64,000 bases of DNA from Mobula birostris (taxonomy: Eukaryota). The DNA is taken from NCBI RefSeq assembly GCF_030028105.1, contig NC_092374.1, positions 174,926,057 to 174,990,056 on the forward strand. Direction: 5' to 3'. Below, one piece after another: positions 60,401-63,504 of this stretch. Position 1 is the stretch's first letter. Each line of letters starts with the position of its first letter. The notes under the pieces are model-generated. The model was given only the letters and a program-made list of their open reading frames with translations, did not search any database and had not been told where the DNA came from. The translations under genes and the position numbers were made by a program.

Positions 60401-62544
60401 CTGCTCCAGATCCCTAACACGGTCTTCCAGAAGCTGCAGCCGGATGCTCTTCACACAGATGTAGTTCCCAGGGAGACTCTGGGCCTCCCAGGACTCCAGC
60501 ATCCAGCATGAAGAATATATAACAGCCGTTTACTACACCAGGTACAGTAAGAGAAACCAAAAGGGAACTTTAACAAAATCTAACCCGGAGCCAAAATCTC
60601 TTTTGAGCCAAAGCCTCATTTAAACCAAAGCTTGACATTCCTACTCTCACCGCTGGCCTACTCCCGATGATGGTCGCCCGGCTTGTCCCTTCTGTACTTT
60701 TAAACAAGCATCACTGACCTGTGAGAAATCTCGTCGCTGTGGCCTGTTCCTGCTGCTGATTGGGCTACTTGTTTAACTTACCTTTAAAAAATATATTTAC
60801 TGTAATTTAGTGATTATTATTATGTTGCTGTCGCAGAACAACAAATTTCACGACAGTGGTATTAAACCAGACTGATATTTATTGTTTATTTATTTAGTAT
60901 TTTCTCAACCTGTGTTCCTTTGCACATTCGTTGTTAGTCTGTCTTGTTGATGCAGTCTTTCATTGATTCTATTGTGTTTTTTAGATTCACTGTGAATCCC
61001 GGCAAGTAAATGAATCTCGGGGTTGTATTTGATAATACATTTATTTTGAACTTTTTTTGACTAGCACTGTGCAATACAGAAAAACAATGATAAATTACGT
61101 TAAGAAATATTCCTCACTCATCTCACAAGTTGTCCTATTTCTAATTATGGGGTTCCTTCACTCAGCCTGTTTCTGTTCCATATTATCAAAGCTTCTTCAG
61201 TCCAGTATTATTCTCCCTTCAATATTACTCTGATCCCCTGTTTCTGCTTCCGGAACAGTGTGTGTGTGGTGGGATTGACATGTGCCCGAGGGTCAGGTTT
61301 GTCACATTACCTGGCAGTCTTACACCACTCCTCCATGGATCCAACGTTATCCATAGCTTCTCCTGTGGCTGTGACTGAATTGCCTTTCCTCCTGTATTTT
61401 CACACCAGGTGGAATGTATAACTGTTGTGGGTTCTACATCTGTTCCATAATGTTAGCCCCTGTCTCTCTGCTCTCAGGCCTTGTAACCAAGTCTTCCCAC
61501 CTTTTATACACACCAGACTCCTCACACCTTCATGATTTTCTTCGTTTACTTTGGGGCCAGAGTTTCTGATCAAAGTGTACAATATCCCGACTCTGCAGGA
61601 CAGTGACACGGTCTATGACCACTATGTCTGTCCTAATCATTAATGACCAATCCACATTATTCCCATTCACTGACACCTAGTCCATAACCTTCTCTGTCTT
61701 GGTTATTCAAGTGCTTCTCAAGGTATTTCTTAAACATTGTGAGTCTGTCTCTCCACCATCCCCCAAGTAGTGTGTTCCAGGCTCCAAACCCTCACCCTCC
61801 GTGTGAACATTCTTCCTCAGATCCCCTCTAAACCTCTCCACCATTTCCTGAACCCCATCTCTCTAGTTTCAGACAAGTTTGCCATGGGCAGGTTTCAAAT
61901 ATGGACGACCCTGTCTTTGCCTGTAATGATTTTGTACCTCTATCATGTCTCCCCTCAGCATCCTCCATTCCAAGGGAAGGGATCTATCCATTCTCTCCTT
62001 CATAACCACACTGCTCCATCACAAACACCACCATGATGGATCTCTGCACCCCGTCCAGTGCGATCTCATCCTTTTCCCCTCCTTGGGGACCACAGATACT
62101 GATGGTATTTCTGAAAATCCCCATGTTTCAGGGTACTTACTGAGAGGGATGGGCCACCTCATCCTGAATCTGGGTCATTCCATAAGAAAGGAACAGAATT
62201 AGGCCATTCGGCCCATCGTCTGTCTGCTCTGCCACTTCATCATGACTGATCCATTTCCCTTTCAGCCCAATCTCCAATCGAACCTCCTCTGTACCCTCTC
62301 CAATGTCAGCACATCTCTCTCAGATAAGGGCCCAAACTGCTCACAATACTCCAGGTAAGACCAGCCCAGTGCCCTATAAAGCCTCAGCATTACATCCTTC
62401 CTTTTATATTCTAGTCCTCTCAAAATAAATGTTCACATTGCATTTGCCTTCCTCACCACCCACCTAACCTGCAAATTAACCTTTAGGGATCCCCGCACGA
62501 GGACTCTCGAGTCCCCTTGCACCTTAGAGTTTTGTCCTCGAGTG

Positions 62545-62769
62545 TGACACCTCCTCCCAAACGACCATGTGTGTGACCTGTCCTCCCCCTGCCCTCAGCT
62601 GTTGTGTTATCACCCCTTCACCGTCCAGTACGTCAGCCCCCTCTGACCCTGCTGTACTCCTCGATGGGAATCCCATCCGGCAGGTGGGACACACAGGTGG
62701 TCTTCCGCCCCCAGCCGAGTCTCCCACCAGGGCCCTCACCTCCCCACTCTGCACCTCAAAGAATACATT
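62545..62769 (-). pseudogene. Decayed TAP-like (ABCB half-transporter) NBD fragment
   Basis: Acceptor tgtttttgcag| then NVFFEVQSGEVRALVGDS(A)GGG/KTTCVSHL.DGIPIEEY (Walker A exon; frameshift and deletion), then a weaker match ADVLDGEGVITQQLRAGGG to the TAP C-terminal AD..VL.GG...THQQL motif. Confidence 0.7.
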
Positions 62770-62783
62770 CTGCAAAAACAGCA

Positions 62784-62870
62784 TGTTTACAATCGAATTC
62801 CAGTTCTTAATTAAAGCGAGACTTTCGTCTTACTTGGCTCTAAGTAAGAACTGGAATTCAATTGTAAACA
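62784..62870. repeat. Inverted repeat, 26-bp arms (1 mismatch), 35-nt spacer
   Basis: tgtttacaatcgaattccagttctta (62784-62809) versus taagaactggaattcaattgtaaaca (62845-62870). Confidence 0.9.
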
Positions 62871-63504
62871 AAGTGGGACAGCAGAAACCTGATTGGATGA
62901 GGACTAACCAATCAGGAGGGATGGACAACAGGGTTAGAAACAGCACCGGACTAGACATCATCATTGCCCCTGACAAAGGTGGTAGAGTTTGTCATCAAAA
63001 CATCAGTTAAAGTCGATACCTGTATCCAGCTGGAGCCAGAGAATAGTTTATTCATCATATACATCGGGAAAGCACCAGATCCATTTTCCATATTAATCAA
63101 CTCCCAGAAAAATTTCACAGCCCACATCCTGGAAGGGCAATCATCCAGAATCTCTCGTCCCCTGTTATGGGCGTCTGGTGCTGCTGGACCAGAGGGTGTG
63201 AGATGGTGACACCAGGTGTCACATGGGGGGCACTAAGTGGGCAAGATAACAGCAACCCTCCCAGGGCCACAACTCTCTCCACTTCCCCACATTCTGGGGG
63301 TCATTACCAGCAGCCAGGAGTAGGCCCAGTAATCACATAACCAATGAGTGCTGTTCAGCCAATGGGGAGGACTGAGATTTGGCAGTTCCGTTCATCTACC
63401 TTCACTGCTTCCCAGAGAGGGACCTGGCACCTCCAGTTGCACTGACATGTTACCTGATCAACACCCTTGGGTCCAGAAACAGCCATTTGAGTCCCTCTCT
63501 CAAT

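Follow-up and report, generated by a model that had tools for sequence, protein, structure and literature searches.

How did a stretch of DNA resembling part of a TAP transporter gene come to lie beside a class I gene of the manta ray (Mobula birostris), and does it represent a gene, the remains of one or a chance resemblance? The stretch sits on the minus strand near the end of the 64,000 nt of DNA analysed here (C6:174926057-174990056; hereafter the window), and the class I gene of the window occupies the plus strand, with alpha1 at ~41.56 kb, alpha2 at ~47.7 kb, alpha3 at ~49.1-49.4 kb and the membrane exon at ~49.7 kb. An initial annotation proposed that a phase-0 acceptor, a frameshifted Walker-A exon and, fused directly to it, the last TAP exon together formed a collapsed TAP duplicate, convergent with the class I gene at a distance of about 11 kb. 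All of the strings that it reported for the minus-strand piece are indeed present in the sequence, and the strands are opposed, with 11-13 kb between the piece and the 3′ part of the class I gene; yet convergence is only part of the picture, as neighbouring dead exons lie on the other strand.

The acceptor and the Walker-A exon behind it proved to be real. On the minus strand, the last 15 nt of an intron (62770..62784; a pyrimidine tract and a CAG acceptor, ...ctgtttttgcag, identified by blastn against TAP1 and TAP2) run into a phase-0 exon start, ttttgcag|AAT GTA TTC..., and hence into a dead TAP Walker-A exon at 62654..62769, which translations, alignment and tblastn show to retain 116 nt of the original 174. 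Positions 62769-62704 read in a single frame as NVFFEVQSGEVRALVGDSAGGG; after a change of frame, the minus strand continues as (R)KTTCVSHLPDGIPIEEY and ends at 62654. A DNA search of the manta genome with 62680-62784 returned three matches (C6:174678759-861, C6:174562100-194 and the unplaced contig C4593; 87-88% identity, E 1e-24 to 1e-27), each of them the Walker-A exon of a TAP gene that is intact and has multiple exons. Across the 114 nt that remain, the relic exon is 91.2% identical to that of TAP1 and 90.4% identical to that of TAP2, the blastn match extending to 62784 for the former and to 62776 for the latter. At the protein level, its first 22 residues align with the manta exon at z = 15 against shuffled sequences, and manta TAP exon peptides recover it by tblastn (E 1e-6). 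Even the acceptor, cag|AAT GTA TTC TTT, lines up nucleotide by nucleotide with cag|AAC GTG TCC TTT of TAP1 and cag|AAT GTG TCC TTT of TAP2, i.e. the relic preserves the conserved exon structure in which the Walker-A exon starts in phase 0 at N/G-V/L-S/T-F. Other ABCB loci in the same genome reach just 43-51% amino-acid identity to the Walker-A exon. Judged by its sequence, the fragment is derived from TAP and from no other ABC transporter, its sole close DNA relatives in the genome being the TAP1 and TAP2 Walker-A exons; the best match is not a non-TAP ABC transporter, the outcome that the initial annotation had itself named as contradicting its reading.

Some searches did point elsewhere. When the frame-1 peptide was compared with solved structures, the zinc fingers of PRDM9 (E 0.003) and, more distantly, ABCB1 (E 0.08) were returned; Pfam gave no match for this peptide, and a shifted frame at 62635-62709 yielded a sub-threshold zinc-finger hint (E 0.1). 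An explanation by chance likeness or by membership of another family (say, a C2H2 zinc finger that has decayed and is read in frame 1, or some other ABCB transporter) would nonetheless have to account for 87-91% DNA identity to TAP exons over 105-131 nt, at E values as small as 1e-27 for a genome of 4 Gb, and for the intact paralogous exon, which per domain matches TAP1 (63 bits), ABCB9 (60 bits) and TAP2 (55 bits) best among solved structures rather than ABCB1. We regard this explanation as having next to no chance of being correct. The zinc-finger reading in particular was rejected, as the string in question arises solely from reading past the frameshift.

The matched genes themselves are live and nearby. 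Exon-wise searches recovered complete multi-exon genes for TAP1 (gene A; C6:174642446-174698106, minus strand) and TAP2 (gene B; C6:174531117-174587041, plus strand), which are arranged tail to tail on the same chromosome as the relic, ~310 kb and ~430 kb away from it, respectively. To name them, TAP2-type reference proteins (P0001, P0016, P0135 and P0150) were taken from a whole-library protein search with the 58-residue exon, the matches of which were mostly two-domain ABCB proteins; for P0001 (residues 1-590), the best match among half-transporters is TAP2. Against human proteins, the membrane-domain exon of gene A scores 54 bits with TAP1, 35 with ABCB9 and 29 with TAP2, and its linker exon scores 62.9 bits with TAP1 vs 59.8 with TAP2. 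Gene B scores 60.5 bits with TAP2 vs 52.4 with TAP1, and its membrane domain is much nearer to the fish TAP2-type reference P0001. In both genes, as on C4593, the Walker-A exon is open and 174 nt long, starts with cag|AAy GTG TCC TTT, encodes NVSFEVRSGEVTALVG-(P-loop)-KTTCVSLLQRFYQPQSGQILLDGIPIEEYEHK.YHRK and is followed by a GT donor; the P-loop is GASAAGKT in TAP1 and GHTGGGKT in TAP2. The TAP1 copy on contig C4593 carries a Walker-A exon that is 98% identical.

Comparison of the two live genes revealed an unexpected similarity of their own. Their Walker-A exons are 94.3% identical in DNA, with differences falling mostly in the P-loop codons, and the following ~80 nt of intron are ~93% identical; outside this stretch, the introns upstream bear no relation to each other, and identity drops to just 66-72% in the two exons that follow. 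The pattern is that of a clear gene-conversion tract comprising the Walker-A exon and ~80 nt of intron (TAP1 side, L002:1330-1588, i.e. C6:174678588-174678846; TAP2 side, L005:1508-1765, i.e. C6:174562107-174562365), and nothing relevant to such homogenisation of TAP1 and TAP2 exons was found in the literature searched. Precisely where the tract ends, the TAP1 intron contains a partial second copy of the 3′ half of the exon, ACCACCTGTGTG...CCCAGCAAG|gt (L002:1280-1340; C6:174678538-174678598). This copy is also present in C4593 and absent from TAP2, and it shares with the relic an AGCA motif and the same 36-nt deletion between TCCTGC repeats; a search of this TAP1 intron for tandem repeats found none.

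For the relic, the tract has two consequences. First, the divergence of this exon cannot be used to date it. Second, the relic resists assignment to TAP1 or TAP2, the live exons having become alike by gene conversion: where these differ, the relic sides with TAP1 at five sites and with TAP2 at four, and its 15 nt of intron lean to TAP1.

Aligned to its paralogs, the live TAP1 and TAP2 exons, the relic displays four lesions. The first, an insertion of 2 nt within 62702-62712, lies between the glycines of the P-loop and the codon for lysine; here the relic reads GGGGGCGGAAG and TAP1 reads GCGGGG-AAG. The second is a 36-nt deletion (12 codons) at 62680-62686, lying between TCCTGC direct repeats, through which QRFYQPQSGQIL was lost. 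Third, homology stops abruptly at 62654/62653, meaning that the final 24 nt of the exon and its donor are gone. Fourth, on the upstream side only 15 nt of intron retain TAP homology, which breaks off at 62784. The frame change seen in the initial annotation thus corresponds to the 2-nt insertion; that 36 nt are deleted, and that the final 24 nt are missing along with the donor, had gone unnoticed. Compared with the live manta genes, then, the relic has the same exon and the same phase-0 acceptor and lacks an intact P-loop, QRFYQPQSGQIL and the GT donor; no intact in-frame Walker A (GxxGxGK[ST]) remains. Nor did a tblastn search over 94 kb with the full set of manta TAP1 and TAP2 exon peptides find a Q-loop, signature, Walker B or H-loop exon downstream on the minus strand. 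With an intron remnant and an acceptor retained, disabling lesions and live parents on the same chromosome, the relic has the features of an unprocessed pseudogene: the Walker-A piece is a dead pseudogene fragment without function.

The second half of the proposed fusion fared differently. Beyond the end of the exon homology lies a G-rich unique tail (62534..62653, minus strand) that contains ADVLDGEGVITQQLRAGGG, and it is this part (62545-62640) that had been read as the last TAP exon, joined directly to the Walker-A exon in a collapsed duplicate. By eye, and with two gaps permitted, ADVLDGEGVITQQLRAGGG can be aligned with ADRIVVLEGGKVVEEGAPQQLQEKG of manta TAP1. Gapped local alignment, however, places this resemblance at chance level: against the TAP1 last exon, the protein score has a z of 0.30 and is equalled by 35% of shuffles, and across the last exons of manta TAP1, TAP2 and the four TAP2-type proteins z ranges from -0.4 to +0.3. 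DNA alignment to the manta TAP1 and TAP2 last exons gives z values of -0.2 and -0.5, tblastn with TAP last-exon peptides finds nothing at the tail and the 136-nt stretch occurs nowhere else in the 4-Gb genome. Had a remnant been no older than the adjoining exon part, which is 91% identical, a DNA comparison would have revealed it readily. That the two exons were directly fused is therefore hardly credible, and the tail has no detectable TAP homology. The initial annotation had allowed that the C-terminal similarity might fall away independently of the Walker A, which is what happened. The tail does bear a weak likeness to the G-rich TAP1 intron downstream of the partial exon copy (z 3.6), too slight to identify it by, and a MAFFT alignment of the two was unconvincing.

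More of a TAP gene exists just outside the window. The initial annotation had advised a search beyond 64 kb, and a tblastn search of the window and a further 30 kb, with every exon peptide of manta TAP1 and TAP2 as query, detected two dead exons ~3 kb from the Walker-A relic, albeit on the plus strand, the minus strand yielding none. One is a Q-loop exon of TAP2 type at window-equivalent 65776-65934 (within region L013:1741-1934, which corresponds to 65741-65934), the other a signature/Walker-B exon, likewise of TAP2 type, at 66190-66303 (L013:2190-2303). The tblastn E values of the latter are 3e-12 to TAP2 and 3e-10 to TAP1; compared with solved structures, the Q-loop piece matches TAP2 alone at E below 0.01 (E 0.002), and the sole other genomic DNA match of the signature exon is the TAP2 exon, at 74%. 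Both are dead: an acceptor AG has become GG, a 35-nt stretch is tandemly duplicated, QEP has changed to QEL, one codon is missing, a TGA stop has arisen, LSGGQ reads ISEGR and a donor is lost. They are 25-36% diverged, vs 9% for the Walker-A piece. A last TAP exon or a membrane-domain exon was not found by tblastn in the window and the 30 kb beyond, and DNA searches with both plus-strand exons as queries found no further pseudo-TAP2 copies in the genome.

Two further features of this region were noted. A minisatellite with units of ~110-145 nt lies directly upstream of the plus-strand dead exons (window-equivalent 65415-65735). In addition, a Walker-A-like match on the minus strand at window-equivalent 65077-64943 (tblastn E 0.016) was rejected, since at the DNA level it is not similar to the exon (z 0.2); its reading frame resembles what we take to be transposon ORF tails common in fish genomes.

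The dead exons are embedded in a cluster of class I genes. On the plus strand of C6, class I alpha2 exons are located at 174913444, 174973767 (the gene of the window), 175023591/175027330/175031070 and 175050868. Class I has thus multiplied: no fewer than six alpha2 exons fall inside 140 kb, and the dead TAP exons lie between two class I genes, with alpha2 exons on both sides on the same chromosome. The resulting order is class I (plus), TAP relic (minus), TAP2 relic (plus) and class I (plus). A comparable TAP remnant was not found by tblastn in the first 1-41 kb of the window, i.e. between the upstream class I copy and that of the window. The suggestion that the locus would be MHC-linked is borne out by its location among UAA-type class I genes on the chromosome that carries TAP1 and TAP2.

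Taken together, the fragment is very likely the relic of a TAP (ABCB2/3) copy in the class Ia region, and the two dead TAP2-type exons beside it very likely record a duplication of TAP alongside class I. TAP sequence would once have been duplicated together with class I genes, after which the extra transporter copy or copies would have decayed and the live TAP1/TAP2 pair, 0.3-0.4 Mb away, been kept. The Walker-A exon copy was inactivated by the 2-nt insertion, the 36-nt deletion and truncation, and is boxed in by transposable elements. What the DNA itself makes plain is the homology to TAP, the set of lesions, the dead exons close by and a location among class I paralogs. For the origin, we infer that all three remnants stem from a block duplication with class I, and that they were probably left by co-duplication of TAP with class I. 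Part of the initial reading survives in this form: the piece is TAP-derived and dead, although the proposed collapsed gene structure does not hold and the resemblance to a last exon is a product of chance. The idea that a class I plus TAP block was duplicated and its transporter then decayed gains from the two additional dead TAP2-type exons 3 kb away, which lend further support to a duplication that included TAP sequence, even if the block origin itself is deduced.

Not everything speaks for a common origin of the three remnants. The Walker-A piece runs on the strand opposite to that of the other two and is 9% diverged, as compared with their 25-36%, so that a common age is not evident. Its low divergence is explicable by gene conversion, yet equally compatible with a later, separate origin. 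Accordingly, the Walker-A piece might be a young copy of ~130 nt that was pasted from live TAP1 or TAP2, by break repair or ectopic conversion/insertion, and then acquired small lesions. Beyond strand and divergence, the sharp ends of homology on both sides (62784 and 62654) would fit such an event, as would the 36-nt deletion and the AGCA motif that the piece has in common with the partial exon copy in the TAP1 intron. Each of these points has a counterpart. Both homology ends lie at transposon or rearranged sequence, which could truncate an old exon equally well; a 36-nt deletion between 6-nt direct repeats could recur by slippage; and gene conversion keeps the exon copies alike, including ~80 nt of intron, which removes the argument from dating. 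Above all, it would be a striking coincidence for a pasted copy to land by chance 3 kb from the very exons that come next in a TAP gene. We therefore consider an independent pasting event unlikely, and prefer decay of a TAP copy duplicated together with class I.

If TAP was indeed co-duplicated with class I, two routes could account for the difference in strand. In route (a), a single TAP2 would have been duplicated and its Walker-A exon locally inverted. This would explain the 3-kb spacing of what are consecutive exons, in line with the live genes, where the distance is 0.8 kb (TAP1) and 5.3 kb (TAP2). The exon is bracketed by an inverted pair of 82 nt (75.6%; 60952-61028 and 64542-64623), which is too weak to serve as evidence for a flip. 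In route (b), the remnants would mark a head-to-head junction of two tandem units (TAP2 > class I > < TAP1), at which a pseudo-TAP1 on the minus strand meets a pseudo-TAP2 on the plus strand. The order and strands of the relics fit such units, as does contig C4593, in which TAP1 is followed by class I on the other strand. A lean towards TAP1 can be seen in the 15 nt of intron, in part of the P-loop and in the 36-nt deletion common with the TAP1 intron copy. On the other hand, several additional deletions would be required, as would a coincidence in which the exons complement one another. The identification of the Walker-A relic as pseudo-TAP1 and of the plus-strand exons as pseudo-TAP2, meeting at the junction of tandem units, is a tentative proposal that we think rather doubtful.

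Relics of this type have a precedent. In the MHC of the saltwater crocodile, pseudo-TAP2 copies are interleaved with class I genes and pseudogenes; these copies contain stops and deletions, one of them is without membrane-domain exons and the authors interpreted them as pseudogenised duplicates (PMC4263668). In both animals, the extra TAP copies adjoin duplicated class I genes. However, the crocodile copies keep 7-12 exons (PMC4263668), whereas the manta has three exon remnants on opposite strands, one in the window and two outside. In elasmobranchs, the class Ia region has been described as a tight linkage of class Ia, psmb8, psmb9, tap1 and tap2 as single copies (Verissimo et al. 2023, PMC10751288), a report in which no TAP remnants are described and the word pseudogene is not used. 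The manta relic agrees with this organisation in lying on one chromosome with TAP1 and TAP2, 0.3-0.4 Mb from them and among UAA-type class I genes, and departs from it in that class I has multiplied and dead TAP exons are located between two of the copies. It is therefore a known kind of relic, a pseudo-TAP beside class I, which is unreported for this lineage in the literature searched and ordinary as biology.

As an evolutionary marker, the relic is of modest value: it indicates that the class I expansion near TAP1 and TAP2 took in TAP sequence, of which one pair was kept. With a single TAP1/TAP2 pair kept, several class I paralogs, including the altered-clamp gene of the window, share one transporter pair, which bears on the idea of class I and TAP co-evolving as linked units. 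Should orthologous remnants exist in other rays, they would provide a means to date the class I duplications. If the tandem-unit route were true, the expansion of UAA-type class I genes in the stingray lineage would represent an en-bloc duplication of a complete presentation unit with subsequent loss of the extra transporters—a datable record, in the oldest jawed-vertebrate lineage, of a class I/TAP linkage that was made and then pruned. For researchers of TAP evolution, the TAP1/TAP2 gene-conversion tract may be of more interest than the relic.

Among runs recorded as RNA, none contains the stretch. Expression was addressed with contigs of four runs over 62300-63300; the label of these runs as RNA is a guess, and contigs are unable to show absence. 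No contig from these four presumed RNA runs covers the relic's own sequence in this interval, coverage being confined to the flanking repeats. One contig (run X4) touches 62654-62684 and runs on into ...CGTTTCTATCAGCCCCAGTCGGGACAGAT, the 36 nt that are absent from the relic, and therefore comes from a live TAP gene; the exon form with QRFYQPQSGQIL is present in RNA-type contigs. These data hint weakly at a silent relic.

The flanking repeats are conspicuous in their own right. At the upstream limit of TAP homology, an interspersed hairpin element (62784..62900) adjoins the intron remnant, its 34-nt inverted arms (62784-62817 and 62837-62870) being 91% complementary. Dozens of copies of this element occur genome-wide at 95-98% identity and many RNA-type contigs lie over 62837-62945; it looks like a young small element that is active or was recently so. 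The other flank of the relic is an interspersed repeat (62280..62533) with several matches of 75-82% inside the TAP1 and TAP2 regions and very high contig depth at 62368-62470.

Comparison of the main chromosome with the unplaced contig revealed differences in the live TAP region. In C4593:13983-109044, a class I alpha2 exon is found on the opposite strand 22.7 kb past the last exon of the TAP1 copy, whereas between TAP2 and TAP1 on the main chromosome (C6:174587041-174698106) there is no class I exon. Moreover, the intron before the TAP1 signature exon measures 27 kb on the main chromosome vs 46 kb on C4593. This mismatch reflects either structurally different MHC haplotypes or an assembly problem.

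Finally, the signature/Walker-B exon of manta TAP1 (L021:171-329; C6:174650171-174650329) encodes the signature LSEGQ and the Walker B LILEDATS. Canonical ABC domains carry Asp-Glu at the place in Walker B where manta TAP1 has Glu-Asp. These motifs suggest that the TAP1-side ATP site of the manta is degenerate, as it is in mammals, but by way of other residues.
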